From contig RDEW01000049.1 of assembly GCA_011109175.1 (NCBI GenBank), positions 83,157 to 116,156 on the forward strand: 33,000 nt of DNA. Direction: 5' to 3'. A program made the position numbers and the translations under genes. The notes below the pieces were generated by a model, which worked only from the letters and a program-made list of their open reading frames with translations, made no database searches and was not told the DNA's origin. Numbering within the stretch: the first letter of the stretch is position 1; every line of letters begins with the position of its first letter. This stretch comes from Dicyema japonicum. Its lineage: Eukaryota > Animalia > Dicyemida. This document shows, one piece after another, positions 134 to 32,827 of the stretch.

Positions 134-1690
134 CACCTAACAATTTGACATTATTTTGCCTTTCTTTCTGAGTGGTCCTGAGGCTACTAAATAATAATTA
201 ATTAACAGGACTGTAAATAAAAATAGACATTAAAAGCATTATGTAAATAAAAAGATATACTCCATCCTCATTTTCGAAAACGATAGACAGCTCAAAAATT
301 ATCTTTAACATGTTTTCCCGCGACAGTCGCGTTTAACCAAAACTCTCAAATGTGAAGGATTCAAATAGCCTGAATGTTTCTGATCACAAGTCGACAGCAA
401 TCTTCGATAAAATTCAGCTAAAAAAGCTGTCCATAGAATAGGCCACATTCCACATTTTTTTCCATGTACGTATAGATTAACCGAAAGCATCAAGTTAACG
501 AGATGAAGGATTCTCCCTGCAGTATAGTCTCATGAATTTTTAATTGTCGGCATTTTAGTGTAATCATATCTTCGATTAGTAAATTAATTATTATATTGAG
601 CGACTTTAATGGCTAGGTAATTTACCTTACAAGATAAGACCTCGAAACAATCAGTCCCACGAGATACTAGTATATTTTAACATGTGTAACGCCCCAAGCA
701 ATGTTTCAACCATTAGCGAATGGGAATATCGTTATCCCTTCGGGGCGTTGCCATCGCAAAGGAAGAAACTAGTTGTGGCCAGCAGAAAAAGTGCATTTTT
801 AATGTCAAGTTGTTACCTCGAGGACAGCCATAAATTAGCTTAAAGGATGATAACCATCGATTCAGCGTCCACAAATGAATTTGCATTAACACAAAATAAG
901 GTCAAATCGGAGCAAGGTAGTTATTCTCACTGCCTCTTTGTCAGAACGTTGCCAAATTTACCACATTGATAAACATTCAACCAAGGATTTGTTAAATAAT
1001 TTCTAGTCGTCTTGAAGCAGACCTTCTAGCATCATATTCCTCTCAAAGAACTTTTTTTAAAAACATATCTTAATGTGATTTCAGATTAATTCGGTCATTT
1101 AGATCATTATGGAAATGTCCTCCTAAACGTCCAGAGATCCTGAAATAAGAGAAGTGGTAAAGTCAGAATAAACTTATGACATCCACATTTGTTGCGAATA
1201 ATATTAAGGATGCTAATAGCATCTATAGTCATCAAATGTATATTTAAAATTACTTTAACGGTTGACCTAATTTTACTGTCAAGGAGAAATATGACCTATT
1301 TTTACATTCAAGTAAAAAAGAACATCGGAGGTTGAAAATCTTTTAGTCCTGATAAATCGATATGTAGCCAAAATCGCACAAAAAAAATATTTTGTCATTA
1401 ATTGATTACCTTATTCGATTTTTTAATATTTCACATAAAATCAATTCGAGAGAGCGAATGTTGGTCATTCGTTACTTGGAACAATATCATCTATTTGATT
1501 CTAAAGAAGGCAAAAGATTCTCTTATCATACTCAGGCTAACTACTTCATACTGCTTTGTGTTAATTTCACGTCTAATCCTCCAAAATTAGACCAATTAAA
1601 TTACCTTGCAGTACTCTTGTCTGAAAAAAAATAATTTCATTTACCCTGCAGTACTTTTGTCTAAAAAAGAATTAGCTATCATCATTCTTC

Positions 1691-1815
1691 TAAAACAAAA
1701 TCCAGGTCATCCGCATATCTTAGTTCCTAGATAAAAGTAGGACAATTTTTAGCTCTCAGATTACGAAGAGCAGCTTCTAGATAGACAACAAAAGGATTGG
1801 TTATTGTGAGTCAAC
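1691..1815 (-). mobile_element. Non-LTR retrotransposon RT remnant (YADD motif) inside duplication copy A
   Basis: Minus strand reads PFVVYLEAALRNLRAKNCPTFI*ELRYADDLDF, i.e. RT domains 4-5 with an in-frame stop; same remnant at 30001-30125 (+). Confidence 0.75.
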
Positions 1816-1888
1816 TTCTGAAGTGTCAATGTGTGTAGCCTATCTTCAGATTCACTTAAAATTTTATTTTCGCGCAAATTGACCTGTA

Positions 1889-2030
1889 ATTAAACATTAT
1901 TCAAAAGATATTAAACTTTTTGACACAATTTTTAAGTATTTTGATAAAGTTACTAAACATTAAGGCAAAGTTATTAGACATTTTTGACAAATTTATTAAA
2001 TTTTATGGTAAAATTATTAAACAAATCGGA
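1889..2030. repeat. Degenerate ~21-bp tandem array upstream of LRR-like gene A
   Basis: About 6-7 units such as attaaactttttgacacaattt, actaaacattaaggcaaagtt, attagacatttttgacaaattt, attaaattttatggtaaaatt; also present in copy B (~29780-29925). Confidence 0.55.
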
Positions 2031-2199
2031 AAACCATGTAAATTGTGTGAATTTAATTAAATTATTTTTTAATTTTATTTTTTTAATCCATCACTTTATT
2101 TAATAAAATTATAATTAATTATGACGACAGTATTTCATGTAGTAATTTTTATTTCTTGTGGTTATTGTATATTTATTATTTTGGTATTTAATCTTATAG

Positions 2200-2974
2200 A
2201 TGTTTTCTTTTCTCGTGTTAAACTTGTCATTCGATATTTTGACATCACAGAATTTATGCAAAAACGAATTAACAGTGAGTAGAACTCTGTATTAAATATA
2301 AATTAATAAGATATTGGATTAATTGTACATATTCGATAACTGGCCTACCTGAATTTTATGTAGCTGCATTAATTGTTCAAAATATTGAATTTGAACCTGA
2401 TGTCATCTTTTCATTATTGGGAATGAATTTAGATAGATTGTATTAATTATTAATTATTCATAGTCAATGTGGTTATTATGATGAAAGTTTAAAAACTGTA
2501 GACAACAAAACATTCCCACCTACCATTAAGGACATGTTACATATTTTTTTAAATTTATAGAATTTTTGATTACTGTAATTCCCTCAAATTCATATCGATC
2601 GAATTTGCGGAAAATTTATCATTACTTGAAATTATGTACATTTTTTGTAATTAATGTAGATCCTTTCCTCAAGGAATAAGTGTAATTCAAAATTTTAAAG
2701 TGGGTTCCAACTTTATTACTTTAAATGAGTATTTTTAATAATAATAATATAGTGTTATCGTTTGCATCAATTCATTCGATAATCCAGAGGCGTATGATAT
2801 TTTATTTAGTATAGATATGAAGCAAAAACTAATAGACTATTATCTATCATAGATAATAAATTGTATATGTTAGAAAATAATATATTTAGAGGAAACAGCA
2901 GGCCGACAAGTGAATATTTCAGTCTAATAATCTGCAGTGCCATTAAAAACAAGTATAATGTACTTGGAATTTGA
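2200..2974 (+). CDS. Putative secreted LRR-like glycoprotein, paralogue A (201 aa, 8 exons, 7 mini-introns)
   Basis: Exons 2200-2288, 2311-2439, 2464-2535, 2561-2635, 2660-2728, 2753-2791, 2815-2862, 2890-2974. Introns are 22,24,25,24,24,23,27 nt, all GT..AG and all phase 2. Spliced ORF: MFSFLVLNLSFDILTSQNLCKNELTVSRTLYWINCTYSITGLPEFYVAALIVQNIEFEPDVIFSLLGMNLDRFQCGYYDESLKTVDNKTFPPTIKDIIFDYCNSLKFISIEFAENLSLLEIISFPQGISVIQNFKVGSNFITLNDVIVCINSFDNPEAYEAKTNRLLSIIDNKLGNSRPTSEYFSLIICSAIKNKYNVLGI*. Splice sites are conserved in paralogue B. The LRR call comes from LxxIxFxxCxxLxxI-like motifs and is less certain than the CDS. The start may instead be the ATG at 2121. Confidence 0.88.
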
Positions 2975-3905
2975 AGAGTTCAATTAAACATTTAACTAAC
3001 TTAATCGTTCATTTTTCTGGGATATAAAATTGGTGTTAATTAATTCAAATTTATTATGATTTAATTATTATCCTGGTTGGACAACTGAATCACACAGCTA
3101 TACTTTTGTCTCTAATAAAATAATTTCACTTCAAAAGACGATTACAGAAGTAATCGACTTTGATAGGTGTTAAAGAACGGACGGTTTTCCTCAGATTTAT
3201 ACAAAACGGCGTATGCAATAACCTTATTAATCATATAAGGACTTAAACTACTTGCTTTACTCACACACGATACTCTCAATGAAGAGGAATATGTTCAAAC
3301 AGTTCTGAACGATGATGGGAGTATTGACTATATAAGGAGCATTGTCATTTTACTTCGAATACTGCAATATAAACCAAAATGGTGCCATATAATAAAATAT
3401 TTAGACTAGGAGATTTAATGCAACTCTCTTTGAAAGACTCCGAAACTGATCAAAGCACTCCATGAAGACGAGGACGTTTATATTCTCTACCCATAAAGAA
3501 CACAGTAATACAATGCACAAATTTAATAAAAATTAACCATGCCCTTTTTCTAGACCACCGATTGGATTAACCCTTATCAAATACTCCAAAACAACACCAA
3601 ACAAAACTGGATCATTCCCCACAAACTTACAGGTACAGCGACAGCTTGACTCATACCAAGTTCAACTTGAGAATGAAATGCGCACAACACCTACGCTACG
3701 AGCTCCAGCACCTCATTGAAAGTCCGTCATACACGAACCTGGATCTGCCAAATCGTAACTAAAGTGTAGTTCAGCCTGCATTTCAGCGGGGAGGTCCTCA
3801 GAGAGATATTCTTTGAGAAATTCTTTTGAATAATTAACTCCAAGTTGTTCCGTTCACTCAAATCTTTGAAATCCAGTATAAAAAAGACACTCCTTGCGGC
3901 TAGGC

Positions 3906-5731: not shown

Positions 5732-5985
5732 ATTTTTTTGATTTTTTTAATAATTTAAATCATTGATTTTTTTGTTGATTAAAATCAAATGATTTAAATC
5801 TAACAACTCTGACATTAATCCATGCGGATGCATCCACGACTATATGGAAAGATGATATTTTTTTGATTTTTTTAATAATTTAAATCATTGATTTTTTTGT
5901 TGATTAAAATCAAATGATTTAAATCTAACAACCCTGACATTAATCGATGCGGATGCATCCACGACTATATGGAAAGATGATATTT
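5732..5985. repeat. 125-bp direct tandem duplication containing a DNA-transposon-like terminus
   Basis: Units 5732-5856 and 5857-5981 differ at 2 nt. Each has repeated atttaaatc/gatttaaatc motifs ending in caac(c/t)ctg (reverse complement CAGGGTTG), reminiscent of hAT-type termini. Confidence 0.85.
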
Positions 5986-7721: not shown

Positions 7722-8290
7722 AGGCCTACTCTTCATCGTATATCTTCAACCCATGCTTAAATTCAATGAGCATACTTTCGAGCGTTCTCTTCAGAACAAC
7801 CGATAGGATGTAAGTCCTCGTTGATTCTTCAATAGATAATTTATCCATATGATTCTTGAAGCATCTTGTGAAACTCTATCCCATGTCAAAACCACTGGGA
7901 AAATCTTCACTCGGCATTCATAGAGCAGCGAAAGTTCATTTGCAAGCAAGTCATATTTGTGAAGTTTCTCAACTTCAACTTGCTTTAGTCGGTCATGTGA
8001 GGTAATGCCCACTTCAATTAAGGTTACTTTCTTCTTTGTTTTGTCGTACACAAAAATATCAGGTTTATTGTATCGGGCTTTTGTTTTTGTCATAATCGAC
8101 GTGTCAAATCTGATTTCGACATTTTGATTCGTCAATATTGACTGAACCGAATGTCCTTTCAATTTCCTGCTTCTTTTGAGTCCATAAATTCGATAAAGTT
8201 GAAGATGGATGCAATTTACCACTTCATTGTGTCATCGGAGCATTTCACCAAACTGAGTGCCCAAATGATCAGCAGTTTTCTATCTTTTTT
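7722..8290 (-). mobile_element. RLE-type non-LTR retrotransposon 3' fragment (Zn-knuckle remnant plus restriction-like endonuclease)
   Basis: KTADHLGTQ..HNEVVNCIH...KPDIFVYDKTKKKVTLIEVGIT...EKLHKYDLLANEL matches the RHN / PD-(D/E)xK / KxxKY signature; frameshifted near the end. Confidence 0.9.
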
Positions 8291-8296
8291 TACCAA

Positions 8297-8990
8297 TGGT
8301 GTCCCACAAGGTTGCCCTTTATTACCCGCCTTATTTAACTTACACATGTCCGATTTACCACAACTCGATAATAAAGACGATTTCCTCCTATCAAATGTTA
8401 ATGACCAATTAATCGGATCCCGCGATCAAGATCTCCTAAAGGCATCAGAAAGACTACAAGAATACCTTCACAAGATTCAAATTTGGTTAAATTATAATCT
8501 ACTTGATATATCTACTGAAAAATCTTCTTCGTCCTTATTTACCTCTGACAAACGACTTTCATCTCACGTCGACGGCATCTCTGGTAGCTGCTCAAGAAAG
8601 CTAGGGAAAATCAAAACTATTTTTGATAATCAATCTAAATTGTTGTATAAGCAATTTGTTGAGCCATCTGTCAGCTATGCCAGTGCGTCATGGGGGATCA
8701 ATCTGTCCTGGACAAACAAACAAAGAATCCTTGGACAATCAGGCCAAAACAACCACTACTATCAGTAATCTCGAGAAACTAGAAAAACTAATACCCTCAT
8801 AACTTAAAGACTTTATCCGACAAACTGGAAAGTGATTTGCTTCTCTGTCAGGCAGTGCAGCTCTCAACAATACACAGTCACAACGTGTCTTATGAGAAAG
8901 GTATTCATCACCCCTCTCTAATTCCTATTCCCCAAACCACTCAGCCCACAGAGAAGTTGTGTTGGATCCCAGAAGGCGCAGGAGGAGAAA
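8297..8990 (+). mobile_element. APE-type LINE reverse transcriptase remnant (domains 4-7 and thumb, internally deleted)
   Basis: NGVPQGCPLLPALFNLHMSDLP is RT domain 4; the YADD motif is eroded to KDD; LYKQFVEPSVSYASASW is the thumb motif. Confidence 0.85.
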
Positions 8991-9589: not shown

Positions 9590-12050
9590 GCCGAAGCACT
9601 GATTACGTTTGACACATGTGAAGGTCATGATGGTGTCAAATGTTACTCCCAATTCTCGGCTTGTTTCTTATTTGAGATTAATTCACCATTCAAAAATAGT
9701 TCGGCCGAATAACTTGATGCCTTCTATTCGACGTAAAAGCGAGGTAAATGACTTTTCTGTGGACGTTGACATTGAATTTTTTTCAACCATTCATGGAGTC
9801 TATCCAGAGTAGTTTTTTGATAACACTCAGGAATTTTATCTGGTCCGCTTGAGTAGGTTAGTTTTGAGGATTTAATGGTATTTTCAAGCTCCACTGATGA
9901 AAACGATATATGATCATGACGACATCTTGTTTTATCAATGACAAGGGAGGACCCTCGTACTTTTTATGAGGAAAGTAGCTGTTCTGAGCGTAGAACTTCA
10001 TCATTATATCCAGTTTTTTTTGCTGAAATCAGGACTGTTTCTCTTCTCAGGGTTCTTTATCATTGAGAGAGTCTTCCACATGATTGACAGGGATCACTGT
10101 TTGTTAAGGTAATTTTTCTCCATTCGTCCATTTCCCTTTTTGAGATTTTCTTTATTTCGCTATCAAGCATTCGAATTGTGTATGTAATTTCTGATGATGG
10201 CCTTTGGATGCTTTTGAGTCGATTACTTTCATTCATAATCTTCTTCGTTTTGCGGTCAAACGTTTAATGTAGGATTGATCTTTCCCCGATAAATACCTTC
10301 ATTGCCTTCTGGATCTTTTTGTCAACATAAGAGACTGCATTATCGAGTTAGTTGAAACCTACTGCGTTGAAATCGGATAAGTTCATGTCCATATATTGAG
10401 AAAAATTTTTCCAATTTCCGTTTCTGTAATCCAGTAAAGTGTTTCGTCTTCCTTCCGAAATGAGCGTGCCCTTTATCCAAATGAAAATAAGATTGTGGTC
10501 GCTCCAAAAGTCATAAATCNNNNNNNNNNNNNNNNNNNNNNNNNNNNNNNNNNNNNNNNNNNNNNNNNNNNNNNNNNNNNNNNNNNNNNNNNNNNNNNNN
10601 NNNNNNNNNNNNNNNNNNNNNNNNNNNNNNNNNNNNNNNNNNNNNNNNNNNNNNNNNNNNNNNNNNNNNNNNNNNNNNNNNNNNNNNNNNNNNNNNNNNN
10701 NNNNNNNNNNNNNNNNNNNNNNNNNNNNNNNNNNNNNNNNNNNNNNNNNNNNNNNNNNNNNNNNNNNNNNNNNNNNNNNNNNNNNNNNNNNNNNNNNNNN
10801 NNNNNNNNNNNNNNNNNNNNNNNNNNNNNNNNNNNNNNNNNNNNNNNNNNNNNNNNNNNNNNNNNNNNNNNNNNNNNNNNNNNNNNNNNNNNNNNNNNNN
10901 NNNNNNNNNNNNNNNNNNNNNNNNNNNNNNNNNNNNNNNNNNNNNNNNNNNNNNNNNNNNNNNNNNNNNNNNNNNNNNNNNNNNNNNNNNNNNNNNNNNN
11001 NNNNNNNNNNNNNNNNNNNNNNNNNNNNNNNNNNNNNNNNNNNNNNNNNNNNNNNNNNNNNNNNNNNNNNNNNNNNNNNNNNNNNNNNNNNNNNNNNNNN
11101 NNNNNNNNNNNNNNNNNNNNNNNNNNNNNNNNNNNNNNNNNNNNNNNNNNNNNNNNNNNNNNNNNNNNNNNNNNNNNNNNNNNNNNNNNNNNNNNNNNNN
11201 NNNNNNNNNNNNNNNNNNNNNNNNNNNNNNNNNNNNNNNNNNNNNNNNNNNNNNNNNNNNNNNNNNNNNNNNNNNNNNNNNNNNNNNNNNNNNNNNNNNN
11301 NNNNNNNNNNNNTTTTTTATCATTGAGAGAGTCTTCCACATGATTGACAGGGATCCCTGTTTGTTAAGGTAATTTTTCTCCATTCGTCCATTTCCCTTTT
11401 TGAGATTTTCTTTATTTCGCTATCAAACACTCGAATTCTGTATGTAATTTCTGGTGATGGCCTTTGGATGCTTTTGAGTCGATTACTTTCATTCATAATC
11501 TTCGTTTTGCGGTCAAACGTTTAATGTAGGATTGATCTTTCCCCGATAAATACCTTCATTGCCTTCTGGATCTTTTTGTTAACATAAGAGACTGCATTAT
11601 CGAGTTAGTTGAAACGTACTGCGTTGAAATCGGATAAGTTCATGTCCATATATTGAGAAAAATTTTTCCAATTTCCGTTTCTGTAATCCAGTAAAGTGTT
11701 TCGTCCTCTTTCCGAGATGAGCGTGCTCTTCATCCAAATGAAAATAAGATTGTGGTCGCTCCAAATGTCATTAATCAATGTTTGAAGATCGAGGCTAGAC
11801 TAAAAAAATTACGAAACGATGNTAAGTTCATGTCCATATATTGAGAAAAATTTTTCCAATTTCCGTTTCTGTAATCCAGTAAAGTGTTTCGTCTTCTTTC
11901 CGAAATGAGCGTGCCCTTCATCCAAATGAAAATAAGATTGTGGTCGCTCCGAAAGTCATAAATCAATGCTTGAAGATCGAGGCTAGACTAAAAAGAATTA
12001 CGGAACGATGGATTTTTGGAGAGTCCCAGCCTTCAATGCCCCTACAATCT
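9590..12050 (-). mobile_element. Degraded APE-type LINE (endonuclease end to RT), split by a gap and assembled redundantly
   Basis: SDHNLIFIW...LDYRNGNWKNF (APE C-terminus), FSSVELENTIKSSKLTYSSGPDKIP (RT domain 0), then LDRLHEWL and LGVTFD (RT domains 6-7). 10056-10519 recurs from 11316, and 11635-11821 recurs at 11823-12009. Confidence 0.8.
10520..11312. other. Assembly gap (793 N)
   Basis: Run of N; the three poly-X ORFs in the track are artefacts of it. Confidence 1.
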
Positions 12051-13066: not shown

Positions 13067-13189
13067 TTAATTTTCTATTAATATTTTAAAATTGGCCGAT
13101 ATTTTTAGTAAAATAATTTTTTGCAAAACAAATTGTTTAAATTAAAATAAATTTAATATCAGGGCTATGTGGTAGCGTATTTTTTGTTA

Positions 13190-13590
13190 CAAGCGTCTAA
13201 CTTGCACTCAGAAACAAGAAATCATTAAATATAAGTATGTGAAACAATATCTAAAAGATTCTCCGATTATAAAAATGATGTTGGAAGACAATCAAATTTT
13301 ACTCAACAGCGTCTAACTTGCACTCAGAAACAAGAAATCATTAAATATAAGTATGTGAAACAATATCTAAAAAATTCTCCGATTATAAAAATGATGTTGG
13401 AAGACAATCAAATTTTACTCAACCGGGATAATATTTTGGGACAAAACCTGCAAAACACTAAAATCTCCACCCCATGACGATAAACTGGTAGAGTGGATGG
13501 GTTCAATGGAACCAACAGGTTTGTCAAATGAATAACTGTTAAGGTGCTCTGATAGACGACTCTTATAGTACATTTACATGGTGAAATGAA
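13190..13590 (+). mobile_element. Tigger/pogo-like transposase N-terminal remnant (CENP-B-type HTH)
   Basis: KRLTCTQKQEIIKYK...ILLNRDNI...DDKLVEWM...LHGE motifs occur in the expected order, with stops, frameshifts and deletions. Confidence 0.55.
13192..13423. repeat. 116-bp direct tandem duplication
   Basis: 13192-13307 and 13308-13423 differ at one base (aaagatt vs aaaaatt). Confidence 0.95.
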
Positions 13591-15665
13591 ATTTTTGCCA
13601 TTGAAAAACTTGTTGAGGAAATTGATTGTGAAGACGACGTAATAATGATCACTTTATAAGAAGGTATAGATTATAATTGCATTAATAATTTCTAGTGATG
13701 ATTAAAACGTTTATTTCTACTAATCCGAGTGGTACATTACCTACGGACTTTCCTGTGAATGAACGGGATGGACAAAACAATAGAACGCATTGAAGTGGTC
13801 AGAGTACAAAAAGACTCCCTAATCCAAATTCTCAACCGGAGTGCCGTGCAAATATTATATTCTCCATGCGATTATCGACCAGGTGAATAAGGAGGACAAA
13901 GATGAGTGGGTGTCGGAAGTTTTCAGAGTATCTNNNNNNNNNNNNNNNNNNNNNNNNNNNNNNNNNNNNNNNNNNNNNNNNNNNNNNNNATTCAATATTA
14001 AATTTAGACATTAGCGTTAACCTGATTTACTCTGGTGATTTACTGAAACTGAAAGAAATTGTCATGAAAAACACGGATAAGGTTATGACTGCGGGGGAAC
14101 TTGTTCTTGTTTACAGTCACTCCCAATTTAACATTATCTAAGAACTAATTTTTGATTTATCGAGGATAAACTAATGTTCGATTCCCCTTATTTCTTAGTG
14201 GCGTAAAAAACAACTCGTCGACTTCGACGACTTTCCTTGCCTCTCCTCTTACATTGTAGAGACAGCCATGACGATTTGATTGACACTTTGAAGACGCATA
14301 GGGACATTTGGTAGAAAAGAGAAGTGATCTACTGACCAAGTATACTTTTTCTGTGCTCTCATTTGACGGAAACCGTGATATTTGCAGGAAATACAAAATG
14401 TTTTGTTGTATATTGAGATAACCGATGGTAATTCACTTTCTTTTACTTTCAGTTCCTTGAAAACAGTTGAAAACCTCAGAAGAGTTAAATGGTTACCTGT
14501 TGATAGAATAATAGTAGAGACAGGTCGTGATATCTATTTTCGGATTCTCCCTGCTGTTCAATGAAACGTATCTGGGAAGCAGACAAGTACATAAAAACGA
14601 GATGGCAAACACTCAAAATTAATAAATGGACAGAAGGATAACTAATTCAAGGACGGAATGGGCCTTCCTGCATAGTTCGGATTTTTATGATTTAAAGCAA
14701 AGTCACGACAATTATAGCTGCTTATAAGGGAATGGACCTCATTGGCAGAAGTGATTATGTAATATTACTTATTCATTGTTCTTTGGGGGGAAAAGATAGA
14801 CTCGATTAAAATGTGAAATTAAAATTGTTTCTGTAAAATAAAGTGGTAGTTATGTTAGATTCTTAGAAGATGCTCTTAAAATTGATCTACGTGGTTGAGT
14901 AGCATTGAAAATGACTATATGTATGAAAGATAAAGTGGGAACTGACTGTCATACTGGAGACTTACAATATTTGGTTTTTCTATCGAAATAGAGCATCTAT
15001 TTATATTAATGAAGTCTTTTAACTCAACTTAGTATCTCAGAGAAAAAATACAGTTTTTATGTTAGAAAGACAGGCAAAAGACTACGCCGCTGACTGGTCC
15101 CCTATGACATCTGTCAACCATAGATAATTGGAATTTACATGCAATGCTTAGGCGATGAGTTAAAACTAGTTCTTCGCGAACAATCCTAGTTACCTCTGGA
15201 AGACTTATAACGACAAAGTGTCCTGCAACTACAGAGGTAGTGTCAAAATAACGAATTATATGACAATTAGCCTTCCATGCAAAAGTGCTTCTATTCAGGT
15301 CATATAGTTTAGATGAGAATATAAGGATTCCCTCTACTCATTCTCACCAAAGAGTCACTGATTTATTGCTTAAAACCGATCGTCTGCTTAAAATTGAATT
15401 TAAAGATCTATTTAAGTGATCCCATGTCAATATCGACTTATATCGAGCTTCCTCCTAAGATTGGTTTAGGAATCCTGGAACTTTCATAAATGCTAAGATT
15501 TCTTCTTGTATCTCTCTATTTTTGATAAAAAGTAATATATTTATACAAACTAAAATTTAAACAAATAATTTAAATAATTAAATAAATTTATAATTATTGT
15601 TTGATGGGCCCTTCGTTTACATCTGTATTTTTTAAATATACTCAGTCAATTAAAGATTTCTTAGT

Positions 15666-20751: not shown

Positions 20752-20925
20752 ATCCCAGTTCACGCAAGCAAACAGGCCATCCAAAACCTGTGCATCACCA
20801 TTGTTCCACTGCCGAACGGAAGTGTCTTCATTGATCTTTGCCGAGGAAGCCGATTGCGTGAAACAGTGATAGGCCGAGAGGATGTCCATCTTCCTCGTAA
20901 ATACGGAAAAATCCAGAACCACATA
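20752..20925 (-). mobile_element. Probable LINE APE C-terminal remnant, same family as 1-133
   Basis: VLDFSVFTRKMDILSAYHCF...VRQWNNGDAQVLDGLFACVNWDF; nucleotide match to 1-133. Confidence 0.5.
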
Positions 20926-27775: not shown

Positions 27776-28808
27776 ATTATATACAGGAGAAATATCAAAT
27801 CACCGACGCTTTAAGTTTGTTCTTCAAATTAGTTCGTCTACCAAAAAATCCTCAACTTCTTGGATCTCCACTGCTCGATGGTCTTTCAAATCAAAGTTTT
27901 TTAAATTCTTGGTAGGAGTGTCTTTTTATACTGGATTTCAAGGATTTGAGTGAACGGAACAACAATAGTTAATTATTCAAAAGAAATTCTCAAAGATCAT
28001 CTCTCTGAGGACTTCCCCGCTGAATTACATTCTGAACTACACATTAGTTACGATTTGGCAGATTCAAGTTAGTGTAAGACGGACCTTCAATGGGGTGCTG
28101 GAGCTCGTGGCGTAGATGTCGTGCGCATTTCATTCTCAAGTTGAACTTGGTGTGATTCAAGCTGTCGCTGTGTTCCTGTATGTTTGTGGAGAAGGATCTA
28201 GTTATGTTTGGTTTTGTTTTGGAGAATTTGATAAGGGTTATTCGAATTGGTGTTCTAGAAAGAAGGTATGGTTGGTTTTTATTAATTTTGTGCTTCGTTT
28301 TACTGTGTTCTTTATAGGAAGGAAGATAAATTTCTTGTCTTCATGGAGTGTTTTGATCAATTTCGGAGTCTATCGAAAAAAGTTGCATAAACCATTCTGG
28401 TCAAAATATTTTATTAGACAACTCTATTTTGGTTTATCTTGCACTATTCGCAGTAAAATGAAGATGTTCCATATGAGTCTATAGTCCCATCATCGTTCTC
28501 AACTGTTTGAACATATTCCTCTTCATTGAGAGTAATCGTGTGTGAGTAAAGCTAGTTGTTTAAGTCCTTATATGATTAATTATGATAATGCATACTCTGT
28601 TCTGCATAAATCTGAGGAAAACCGTCCGTTCTTTAACACCTATCAAAGTCGATTTTTTCTGTAATCGTTTTTTTAAGTGAAATTATTCTTTTAGAGACAA
28701 AAGTATAGCTGTGTGATTCAGTTGTCCAACCAGGATAATAATTAAATCATAATAAATTTGAATTAATTAACACAATTTATATCCCAGAAAAATGAACTAT
28801 TAAGTTAG

Positions 28809-29613
28809 TTAAATGTTAAATTGAACTCCGCAAGTTCCAAGTACATTATACTTGTTTTTATTGGCACTGCAGACTGAAATAACATTATTAATTACGTAAT
28901 TCACTTGTCGGCCTGCCGTCTTTTCTAAATATATTATTTTCTAACATATACAATTTATTATCTTCGAGATATAATACTCCATTAGTTGATACTTTATATC
29001 TATACTAAATATAATATCATACGCCTCTGGATTTCCGAATGAATCAATACAAACGATAACACTATATTATTATCATTAAAAATACTCATTTAAATAAATA
29101 AGGTTAGAAGTAATTTTAAAAATTTGAATAACATTTATTCCTCTAGGAAAGTTACTACATTAATTATAAATTCGTACATATTGTTAAGTAATGATAAATT
29201 TTCCGCAAATTCGATCGATATGAATTTGAGAGAATGACAGTATTCAAAATATCTATAAATTTAAAAATATATGTAACATGATGAAAATAGTAGGCGGGAA
29301 TGTTTGGTTGTCTACAGATTTTAAACTTTGATCATTATTACCACAACTACTATAAATAATTAATAATTAATACAAACCATCTAACTTCATTCTTATTAAT
29401 GAAAAGTTGACATCAGGTTCAAATTTAATATTTTGAACAACTAATCCAATTATTTTAAAATCAGATAGGCCAGTTATCGAAACTGTACAATTATTCCAAT
29501 ATCTTAATAATTTATATTTAATACAGAGCTCTATTTCTTATTGAATCGTTTTTGCATAAATTCTGTGATGTCAAAATATCGAATGACAAGTTTAACACGA
29601 GAAAAGTGAACAT
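28809..29613 (-). CDS. Putative secreted LRR-like glycoprotein, paralogue B (204 aa, 9 exons, 8 mini-introns)
   Basis: Exons 29613-29525, 29502-29374, 29349-29278, 29252-29178, 29154-29086, 29061-29023, 28999-28952, 28924-28896, 28873-28809. Introns are 22,24,25,23,24,23,27,22 nt, all GT..AG; the first seven are phase 2 and the last phase 1. Spliced ORF: MFTFLVLNLSFDILTSQNLCKNDSIRNRALYWNNCTVSITGLSDFKIIGLVVQNIKFEPDVNFSLIRMKLDGFSCGNNDQSLKSVDNQTFPPTIFIIYFEYCHSLKFISIEFAENLSLLNNINFPRGINVIQIFKITSNLIYLNDVIVCIDSFGNPEAYKVSTNGVLYLEDNKLKDGRPTSELLCSANKNKYNVLGTCGVQFNI*. No internal stops. The start may instead be the ATG at 29692. Confidence 0.9.
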
Positions 29614-30000
29614 CTATAAGATTAAATACCAAAATAATGAATATATGATAACCACAAGAAATAAAAAATACTACATGAAATACAGTCGTCATAATTAATA
29701 ATAATTTTATTAAATAAAGTGTTGGATTAAATAAATAAAATTAAAAAATAGTTTAATTAAATTCACACAATTAACATGGTATTCCTATTTGTTTAATAAT
29801 TTTACCATAAAATTTAATAAATTTGTCAATAATATCTAATAACTTTGCCTTAATGTTTAGTAACTTTATCAAAATGTTTAAAAATTGTGTCAAAAAGTTG
29901 AATACCTTTTGAATAATGTTTAATTACAGGTAAATTAGCGCGAAAATCAAATTTTGTGTGAATCCGAAGAGAGGCTACGCACATTGACACTTTAGAAGTT

Positions 30001-30125
30001 GACTCACAATAACCAATCCTTTTGTTGTCTATCTGGAAGCTGCTCTTCGTAATCTGAGAGCTAAAAATTGTCCTACTTTTATCTAGGAATTAAGATATGC
30101 AGATGACCTGGATTTTGGTTTTGAA
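30001..30125 (+). mobile_element. RT YADD remnant inside duplication copy B
   Basis: PFVVYLEAALRNLRAKNCPTFI*ELRYADDLDFGFE; the in-frame stop is shared with copy A, so decay predates the duplication. Confidence 0.75.
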
Positions 30126-31124
30126 GTATGATGATATCTAATTCTTTTTTAGACAAGAGTACTGCAGGGTAAATGAAATTATATTTTTTCAGACAAGAGT
30201 ACTGCAAAGTAATTTAATTGGTCTAATTTTGGAGGATTAGACGTGAAGTTAACACAAAGCTGTATGAAGTAGTTAGCCTGAGTATGATGGAAGAATCTTT
30301 TGCCTTTTTTAGAATCAAATAGATGATATTGTTCTAAGTAACGAATTATCGTCATTCGCTCTACTGATTTGATTTTATGTGAAATATCGAAAAATCGAAT
30401 AAGGTAATCGTTTGATGACATATGAATGTTTCTGTGCGATTTTGGCTACAGATTGATCTATCAGGACTTATAGCTTTTCAACCTCCGATCTTCTTTTTTA
30501 CTTGAAAGTAAAAATAGGTCATATTTCTTCTTGACAGTTAAATTAGGTCAACCGTTGAAGTACTTTTAAATATACATTTGATGACTATTGATGCCATTAG
30601 TATCCTTAATATTATTCGCAACCAAATGTGGATGCCTTTGGTTTATTCTGACATTACCACTTTTCTTATTTCTTGATCTGTGGACGATTAGGAGGACATT
30701 TTTTTAATGATCTAAATGACCGAATTAATCTGAAATCACATTAAGATATGTTTTTGAAAAATAAAGAGTTCATTGAGACCAATATGATACTGGAGGTTTG
30801 CTTCAAAACGAGTAGAAATTAATCAACAAATGCTTGGTTGAATGTTTATCAATGTGGTAAAATTGGCAACGTTCTGACGACGAGGCAGTGAGAATAGCTA
30901 CCTAGCTCCGTTTTGACCATAATTTTGTGTTAATGAAAATGCATCTGTGGACGCTGAATCGATGGTTATCAGTCTTTAAGCTGATTTATGGCTGGTCCCC
31001 GACACTAACTTGACTTTAAAAAATGTTTCTTTCTTTGCGATGGCAACACCCCGAAGGGATAACGATACTCCCATTCGCTAATGGTCGAAACATTGCTGCG
31101 GCGTTCACATGTTAAAAAATACTC

Positions 31125-31545: not shown

Positions 31546-32760
31546 TAAATCGTGTCCTTTGAGATCGCATGAACGAGTTTCCTCAACTCTCCCCGATCCG
31601 TTGCAATTTGGAGTAGCCTTGATATAAGAATTCCCGTAACCTCCTCCACCGTGGATAGCTACCAAGTCTTTGGTCGGCCAGGTCTTCTCTTCCGAGTGAT
31701 ATTGCTCAGCATATTGGTTCTTTCAAGGGAATCAAAGCGGACAACATGCCCAAAAAACGCCATTCTGTGTTTTACGATTCTTCCTTTAGCGAAATGTCCG
31801 TTTCCACCCGTTTGAGTACATCAATGTTTTTAATTTAAAAGTCCAATGGATTCTTACTAACCTCCTTCAGTACCACAGCTCAAAAGCATCAATTTTTCGT
31901 CTATCCACTTTTTTCAGTATCCATGATTCTCCGCGGAATAGGAAAACCGGTAACACGATTACATTAACCAGTCTGCATTTGGTCCTTAATCAAACATCTT
32001 TGCTTTTCCAAATTCTATTCATTCTCTGGAAGGTGTCTCGTCCCATGGCAATTCGCCTCTTGATTTCCAAACCTCCGTCATTATTCCGATTAATTAGACT
32101 TCCCAGAAAGACAAAATTATCTCAAATCTCTTGTTTCTTATTCCCAATTTTTTAGTTCCATTATTAGCAGTAGTCATAATTTCGGTCTTCTTGATATTTA
32201 GCAATAAACCAAAGACGACGCTCTATTCTCTGAATCTTAGAATCAACTCCCTGAGGCCATCCTCTGTTTCAGCCAGTAAGGTTGCATCGTCAGCATAGCG
32301 CAAATTATTGATGTTGCTTCATCCAATTTTAATCCCTTTTTTGATACAGTATCCAATTTAGTCATGATCATTTCGGCATAAATATTGAATAGGATGGGAG
32401 ATAATAAGCATCCTTGTCTTACTCCTTTACTAATTTTAAACCAATCGGTATCTCCATACACTGTTCTAACAGTAGCTTCTTGATCCTTATAAAGAGATTT
32501 GATAAGCAATATCAGATGGGCATCGAATCCAAATTCTTTTAAAGCGGACCACAGCTTGTCATGTATAACGGAATCAAAAGCTTTCCGATAGTCAATGAAG
32601 CACATGTATACACTCTTTTGGGATTCATGGGCTTTCTCCATAATCCACCGGACATTTGCTATATGGTCACGTGTGCCTCGTCCCTTCCTGAATCTTGCTT
32701 GGACATCCGGTAGAATCATTTCGGCATTTGGCATTAGACGATGTTGTATAATGTCACAGG
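31546..32760 (-). mobile_element. RTE/BovB-like LINE, 5'-truncated, RT to 3' end, frameshifted
   Basis: QARFRKGRGTRDHIAN...CFIDYRKAFDSVIH...KGVRQGCLLSPILFNIYAE(fs)INNLRYADDATLLAE...FVFLGS...DAFELWY*RRL...FFGHVVR...PTKDLVAIHGG; 3' GGACACGA motif. Confidence 0.95.
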
Positions 32761-32827
32761 CGCAACAGTTTATCAAATTAATGATTTAATTTATCAAATT
32801 AATATATATAATTTGACCAAACTAGTG

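Follow-up and report, generated by a model that had tools for sequence, protein, structure and literature searches.

Hypervariable LRR binding faces are known from the VLRs of lampreys and hagfish and from the NLR and RLP resistance proteins of plants, and the glycoprotein-hormone receptors are an example of genes in which each exon encodes one LRR and the introns share the same phase. Canonical LRRs of the 'typical' class carry the segment LxxLxLxxNxL or LxxLxLxxCxxL, with the concave strand formed by positions 3–5 of the conserved segment (PMC2946307). Units of the TpLRR or BspA-like class (Pfam LRR_5) are 23–25 residues long and follow the consensus LxxLxLxxxLxxIgxxAFxx(C/N)xx (PMC2946307); under that nomenclature, the strand of the protein described below would be its invariant half, and its hypervariable residues would be assigned to the 'variable segment'. 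For nested LRRs of the IRREKO type (LxxLxLxxNxLxxLxLxxxxx), which have 21-residue units and are almost exclusively bacterial, strands on both faces have been proposed (PMC2946307). At the level of gene structure, introns of about 22–27 nt with a donor signal reduced to 'GTa' have, among animals, been reported only in two parasitic lineages, myxobolid myxozoans and Dicyema japonicum (PMC13644364). The Dicyema assembly has a G+C content of 36.7%, contains 49% repeats with many LINE copies, and holds ~5,000 genes in 67.5 Mb (PMC6736024).

Here we describe a previously unannotated pair of genes, without detectable relatives, in a 33,000-nt stretch of DNA (hereafter the window, to which all positions refer). 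The gene is intact in both copies, its predicted product contains a periodic repeat, and the differences between the copies are concentrated at specific sites of that repeat. Our preferred reading, to which we assign a probability of about 0.6, is that this intact pair encodes an LRR-like secreted or surface protein, one binding face of which has been under diversifying selection, such that the two products would recognise different partners.

An inverted duplication with two copies of a predicted gene

The window is AT-rich (34% G+C), its long standard-code ORFs are reverse-transcriptase (RT) fragments only, and it looks like a gene-poor, repeat-rich animal scaffold. The RT fragments are of the RTE-like LINE type (Pfam RVT_1) and are located at 8142–8765 (+), 32246–32785 (−) and 7794–8231 (−); for a 180-aa RT fragment, the best named relative is a protein of Octopus vulgaris with 66% identity, which would be of note should the genome belong to a cephalopod parasite. 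A ciliate genetic code was considered and rejected, with TGA-only ORFs performing no better than chance and the RT fragments reading in the standard code. Rfam and tRNA scans of positions 2100–33000 gave no match, and a search for contigs encoding two of the window ORFs found none on record.

Several other repeats are present. Direct repeats at 10053–10549 and 11313–11994 are 97% identical and lie on either side of a gap of 793 Ns (10520–11312), which may result from misassembly or from a tandem duplication that collapsed there. Altogether, the window contains four runs of N, the others being 13934–13989 and single Ns at 11822 and 25551. Tandem or near-tandem repeats occur at 5732–5981 (two copies of 125 nt) and 13181–13412 (two copies of 116 nt), and the segment 25092–25851 contains two 300-nt copies, 460 nt apart, with 99% identity. 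A second, short inverted repeat pairs 1–133 with 20752–20883 (85–89% complementary) and is unrelated to the arms described next.

The main inverted duplication, defined by repeat search and MAFFT alignment, consists of arm A at 673–3900 (+) and arm B at 27923–31121 (−), i.e. two arms of 3.2 kb with ~24 kb between them. The alignment gave ~90% identity and placed the boundaries of arm A at ~690 and ~3880. The motifs that the initial annotation had compared as 'A vs B' come from these two arms, which hold the only two copies of the gene within the window, copy A in arm A and copy B in arm B. Arm A also contains LINE remnants, and an RT-box-like remnant (..RYADDLD..) is found in it at ~1700–1730 on the − strand, so that the duplicated arms carry LINE debris upstream of the gene. 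A 122-codon ORF at 28116–28481 (+) is open in arm B only, its arm A counterpart at 3577–3690 (−) being broken; it lacks a Pfam match and is unlikely to represent a gene. An AT-rich stretch at 2052–2090 lies ~110 nt upstream of the copy A start codon.

In the alignment of the arms, short GT..AG segments are near-invariant, and differences cluster in the intervening sequence. When the segments 2440–2463, 2536–2560, 2636–2659 and 2729–2752 are taken out, one frame is open in both copies. Based on a splice-aware ORF search and comparison of the copies, the predicted gene of copy A extends from ATG to TGA at 2200–2974 (+), with an in-frame TAG immediately 5' of the ATG at 2200, and has 210 codons in seven exons (2200–2288, 2311–2439, 2464–2535, 2561–2635, 2660–2728, 2753–2791 and 2815–2974). 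The predicted copy B at 28809–29613 (−) has 213 codons, with exons at 29613–29525, 29502–29374, 29349–29278, 29252–29178, 29154–29086, 29061–29023, 28999–28896 and 28873–28809. The spliced translation is open in both copies, and exons 1–6 have identical lengths. Copy B has a specific 22-nt GT..AG insert at 28895–28874, where copy A has 16 coding nucleotides (2915–2930); when the insert is removed, the frame is kept to the stop at 28809–28811. This segment could have been gained or lost recently as an intron, or it could provide an alternative C-terminus. A six-exon model ending at 2851 was rejected in favor of the seven-exon one, under which both copies gain an in-frame canonical LRR unit and dS equals the flank rate.

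The six predicted introns of copy A are 22, 24, 25, 24, 24 and 23 nt long, all in phase 2; five start with GTA and one with GTT, and all acceptors are AAG or TAG. Their size and donors agree with those of the ultra-short-intron animal lineages. On the + strand, intron 1 (2289–2310, GTA..AAG), intron 2 (2440–2463, GTA..TAG) and intron 3 (2536–2560, GTT..TAG) each show one difference from copy B, and intron 4 (2636–2659, GTA..TAG) has 23 nt in copy B owing to a 1-nt indel. Introns 5 (2729–2752) and 6 (2792–2814) are also GTA..TAG, and splicing of intron 6 adds a canonical LxLxxNxLxxLxxxxF repeat to the ORF of both copies.

Integrity of the gene in both copies

A sceptical explanation would be that there is no functional gene. 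The arms would then be junk DNA that was duplicated, or pseudogenes in decay, and the spliced ORF would be produced artificially by the picking of GT..AG pairs in AT-rich DNA. Such an explanation is in line with the lack of a homologue in our searches, with the LINE remnants in the arms, and with the behavior of the search method itself. The spliced ORF search returned 719 and 701 nt at the two copies, compared to a maximum of 602 nt in 82 other 1-kb tiles and of 410 nt in 100 shuffles; when 1.2-kb tiles were used, it also returned a 713-nt path at 31573–32298 (+), which has four GT..AG segments of 23–26 nt and is antisense to an RT fragment. We treated this path as a false positive of the method, and because it was found elsewhere in the window, ORF length by itself is not decisive.

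Conservation between the two copies is a stronger argument for a gene than ORF length. Both copies have the same ORF and the same splice sites, with 24 of 24 splice-dinucleotide bases conserved, whereas simulations that put 88 neutral substitutions into the aligned coding sequence (573 bases) left it free of stops with a probability of 0.011. The same 573 nucleotides are devoid of indels, compared to 10 gap events over 2183 flanking nt; the copies are distinguished by indels within intron 4 and, beyond codon 191, in the unaligned 3' tail. The substitutions further show an asymmetry between residue classes, with 14 of 78 hydrophobic residues changed as against 42 of 113 other residues (P = 0.006), as expected for a folded protein. 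We therefore regard the absence of a gene as very improbable. The locus is probably a real, intact, orphan gene pair with a small, LRR-like, secreted product.

Repeat architecture of the predicted protein

At the N-terminus, a hydrophobic segment precedes a polar stretch, much as in a signal peptide, which suggests that the product may be secreted. Both copies have six cysteines in common (Cys198 being in the unaligned tail), as well as three N-glycosylation sequons beyond the signal-like N-terminus (NCT, NxT and NLS). The ORF ends at 210–213 residues without a TM region.

Six LxxLxL units start at residues 47, 70, 94, 119, 143 and 164, i.e. with spacings of 23, 24, 25, 24 and 21 residues, within the 20–30 residues of the tandem repeats of the LRR superfamily. 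U1 (LxxLxL, aa 47–52) is located at 2360–2377 (+) inside exon 2. U2 (LxxFxC, aa 70–75, 2429–2470), U3 (IxxIxF followed by xxCxxL, aa 94–105, 2525–2567), U4 (LxxIxF, aa 119–124, 2625–2666) and U5 (LxxVxVxxNxF, aa 143–153, 2721–2762) span introns 2, 3, 4 and 5, respectively, and U6 (xxxLxIxxNxL, aa 164–174, 2831–2863) lies inside exon 7, all on the + strand. Introns 2, 3 and 4 split the codon for position 4 of U2, U3 and U4. The three motif pairs reported in the initial annotation appear as described once the mini-introns are removed, namely LDR-F-QCG/LDG-F-SCG (aa 70–76), IKD-I-IFD/IFI-I-YFE (aa 94–100) and LEI-I-SFP/LNN-I-NFP (aa 119–125), and the phase-2-split codon encodes the middle residue of each.

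The repeat register was picked on hydrophobicity alone. When the chain was slid from −12 to +12 residues, a single one of the 25 registers was best, with 17 of the 18 sites at core positions 1, 4 and 6 occupied by hydrophobic residues in both copies, and the next best reached 11 of 18. A best chain of at least 17 arose in 0.25% of 2000 column shuffles (P = 0.0025). An alternative in which the invariant LKFISI-type half is the strand, as in TpLRR or glycoprotein-hormone-receptor proteins, would place the variation on the other side of the fold. It corresponds to sliding the register by 11 residues; U2 and U3 fit it by eye, but it suits two or three units only, with 6 of 18 core sites hydrophobic across the six units as opposed to 17 of 18. 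It was dropped as the primary reading but still bears on which face is the variable one.

The LRR assignment has a competitor in which the gene is real and fast-evolving but its product has a fold other than LRR, either beta-rich or mixed. The variable residues would in that case simply be those on the surface of a rapidly evolving secreted orphan, and a composition rich in Ile, Leu, Phe and Asn would account for the LxxLxL chain. Homology searches leave room for it. Pfam was scanned exon by exon, i.e. with exon-sized queries of low power: 13 of 14 pieces matched no family, the other gave a sub-threshold non-LRR match, no exon scored above the gathering score of LRR_5, and, as a weak negative, no exon matched any LRR family at E ≤ 10. 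This was the form in which the profile check for LRR families proposed in the initial annotation was carried out, and it returned no LRR match. Sequence searches of the PDB with single exons 2, 4 and 7 found no real relative and no receptor chain at E ≤ 10; a match over 13 residues between the Cys region near the N-terminus and a strand of TCR V-alpha is at chance level (E = 1.3). Atlas searches with single exons gave nothing usable, and a profile of exon 2 compared with 1.84 billion representative proteins found no real relative, its two matches being translated satellite (tandem) repeats.

Pattern statistics on the whole protein likewise leave room for a non-LRR fold. Counts of the regular expression LxxLxLxxNxL did not exceed those in composition-matched shuffles (P = 0.33 and 0.64), and the autocorrelation of variable sites at lags 23–25 was not significant (P = 0.15). 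The hydrophobic autocorrelation had a weak peak at lag 12 and none at 24; the lag-12 peak fits the presence of two LxxLxL-like halves per unit in U2–U4. Asn or Cys at position 9 occurs in three of the six units (U3, U5 and U6).

Against a by-product of composition stand the significance of the chain and its uniquely best register, together with the exon structure, in which exons of 72, 75 and 69 nt encode approximately one repeat each, running from mid-strand to mid-strand with phase-2 introns recurring at the same repeat position. In addition, U3 (IxxIxFxxCxxL), U5 (LxxVxVxxNxF) and U6 (xxxLxIxxNxLxxLxxxxF) have the form of canonical highly conserved segments, and the two C-terminal units, U5 and U6, match the published LxxLxLxxNxL consensus exactly (PMC2946307). 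The distribution of the variation, described below, also speaks for repeats, because it targets motif positions 2, 3 and 5 beyond polar sites in general. We thus consider a non-LRR fold unlikely and favor a putative LRR solenoid. The initial annotation had read the pair as LRR paralogues; a spliced gene in two copies, the periodic LxxLxL motif with about one repeat per exon and the hypervariable x positions support this in part, and a Pfam LRR match on any exon is the part that failed to appear.

Divergence between the copies

Coding sequence has diverged more than its surroundings. In the six-exon model, 85 of 533 exon positions differ (16.0%), compared to 8 of 118 intron positions (6.8%) and to 8.4% in the upstream and 11.0% in the downstream flank (exons vs all non-coding sequence, P = 2e-5). 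For the seven-exon model, comparison of the two sequences gave dS = 0.119, dN = 0.186 and omega = 1.56. The dS value is indistinguishable from the flank distance of 0.104, and pN exceeds the flanks with P = 7e-5. Because silent sites have evolved at the flank rate, the excess is specific to amino-acid-changing sites, which argues against an old gene pair whose flanks have merely been homogenized. The same rates bear on the decaying-pseudogene explanation, with dN above the neutral rate instead of equal to it.

The changes are distributed unevenly along the repeats. At the x positions 2, 3 and 5 of the motif, 14 of 18 residues (78%) and 24 of 54 bases (44%) have changed, whereas at core positions 1, 4 and 6 only 2 of 18 residues, both conservatively, and 3 of 54 bases (5.6%, i.e. 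below the flank rate, which again speaks against decay) have changed. Positions 7–11 are intermediate, with 15 of 90 bases changed (17%), and the rest of the repeats has 36 of 273 (13%). Taking all non-motif positions together, 33 of 121 residues differ (27%; x positions vs these, Fisher P = 6e-5). Base divergence of the x codons relative to the flank rate of 9.7% gives P = 4e-11, such that the predicted exposed positions of the repeats have diverged ~4 times faster than the surrounding DNA. When all motif instances in any phase were counted, 19 of 32 x residues had changed, compared to 33 of 107 elsewhere (P = 0.006). The observation in the initial annotation that core hydrophobic residues are fixed and the x positions change is thus confirmed for the six units taken together. 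Given the predicted fold, such a pattern is what diversifying selection on a binding surface would leave behind.

Among the units, all three x residues have changed in U1, U3 (7 of 9 bases), U4 and U6, two in U2 and none in U5. The initial annotation had further placed the variable residues next to exon junctions. As a general statement this is not significant, with 13 of 36 residues within 3 codons of a junction variable vs 43 of 155 elsewhere (P = 0.32). U1 and U6 have variable triplets away from any junction, and U5 lies at a junction but has none; the pattern therefore belongs to the motif, and the link to the junctions is incidental.

Within the coding sequence, the differences form a mosaic of long identical runs and multi-change codons. 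The block LKFISIEFAENLSLL, a 45-nt run at 2583–2627 (+) in the invariant second half of U3, is identical at the DNA level in both copies, as noted previously. By itself, this length is unexceptional arm-wide, identical runs of 83, 61, 54, 51 and 49 nt being present in the arms as well; the three longest runs of the coding sequence (61, 45 and 40 nt) nevertheless sum to 146 nt vs 74 nt expected (P < 0.0002). Codons with two or three changed bases, which the initial annotation had described as frequent, number 20 compared to 12 expected (P = 0.002).

This mosaic could in principle arise from patchy exchange, in which micro-conversion or cassette-like transfer from diverged family members imported the hypervariable triplets, as opposed to point mutation and selection. 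The surplus of multi-change codons agrees with such exchange, as do the number of difference pairs within 2 nt (37 vs 24.7 expected), the change of five of six adjacent bases at aa 95–96, and an exon-per-repeat layout that permits modular exchange. On the other hand, the patches, one or two codons in length and broken up by conserved introns and the invariant codon of position 4, are shorter than usual conversion tracts. Moreover, dS equals the flank rate, the flanks are mildly clustered as well (P = 0.019), the window holds two copies only, and no further member was retrieved with the exon 2 profile. Taken together, we consider exchange a rather improbable source of the triplets, and retain point mutation followed by diversifying selection as the preferred reading.

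Comparison with known systems and implications

In terms of mechanism, the data are compatible with the following sequence of events. An inverted duplication would have left an intact, lineage-specific gene in both arms. With seven small exons separated by phase-2 introns of 22–25 nt, this gene would encode a protein of ~210 residues with six LRR-like units. Since the duplication, amino-acid changes have gathered preferentially at residues 2, 3 and 5 of the LxxLxL motif, whose side chains would point outward from one face of the solenoid, while residues 1, 4 and 6, predicted to be buried, and the latter half of the units stayed fixed. Diversifying selection on that single binding face could then have led to two paralogues that recognise different partners. 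Which of the LxxLxL-like halves lines the concave face is deduced here from the canonical LRR rule and depends on the real strand register. That the paralogues bind different ligands, as the initial annotation suggested, is plausible if the variable face is indeed a ligand-binding one.

Compared to canonical LRRs of the 'typical' class, the protein is alike in its six tandem units of 21–25 residues, in the hydrophobic positions 1, 4 and 6 and in the LxLxxNxLxxLxxxxF sequence of U6. It differs in that three units lack Asn or Cys at position 9, in the small number of units (approximately six), and in N- and C-terminal caps that are unrecognisable. The TpLRR or BspA-like class is approached by U2–U4, which have F-x-x-C/G followed by S-L-K-x-I/V-x-I/N and a length of 23–25 residues. 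Those same three units, with two LxxLxL-like halves ~12 residues apart, are also reminiscent of IRREKO-type nested LRRs, although the units here have 23–25 instead of 21 residues and the likeness is one of pattern.

With respect to exon organization, the locus shares with glycoprotein-hormone receptors the exons of 69–75 nt that encode one repeat each and the phase-2 introns at the same repeat position, but its introns measure 22–25 nt, and it has neither a 7TM nor a hinge region. Membership in the glycoprotein-hormone-receptor/LGR ectodomain group is not indicated, as single exons 2, 4 and 7 matched no receptor chain and the ORF terminates without a TM segment. The likeness to BspA/LRR_5 and to glycoprotein-hormone receptors proposed in the initial annotation therefore stands as a resemblance in pattern only; exon by exon, it has no counterpart in a Pfam or receptor match.

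The closest parallel in the distribution of variation is to the VLRs and to the plant NLR and RLP proteins, with which the locus has in common variation at the x residues of xxLxLxx (exposed there, and predicted to be exposed here), a fixed hydrophobic scaffold and omega > 1. In contrast to these, we find two germline paralogues of a small, probably secreted protein that has no signalling domains and no sequence relationship to them, and the gene pair gives no sign of the somatic assembly seen with VLRs. The pair is of a familiar kind, an LRR-type binding surface that would be under diversifying selection, and reveals no new mechanism.

A more far-reaching conjecture, which we regard as speculative and improbable, is that the two genes are members of a bigger family, so far unannotated, whose LRR-like secreted products are hypervariable and modular by exon, in a highly reduced parasite (myxobolid or dicyemid). 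One solenoid face of these proteins would have been diversified by very strong recurrent selection or by templated exchange of patches the size of a codon, and together they might constitute a germline repertoire for recognition or evasion that follows the same logic as VLRs and plant R genes. To our knowledge, no variable repertoire of this kind has been described in this animal lineage.

Genes like this pair would escape ordinary gene finders as well as profile searches. If confirmed, the locus would represent an unannotated gene pair without detectable relatives in a genome that splices introns of 22–25 nt. It would carry a signal of adaptive divergence, amounting to 44% at 18 codons predicted to be exposed as compared to ~10% at neutral sites and 6% at codons predicted to be buried, and such proteins would be candidates for host–parasite recognition or immune evasion.
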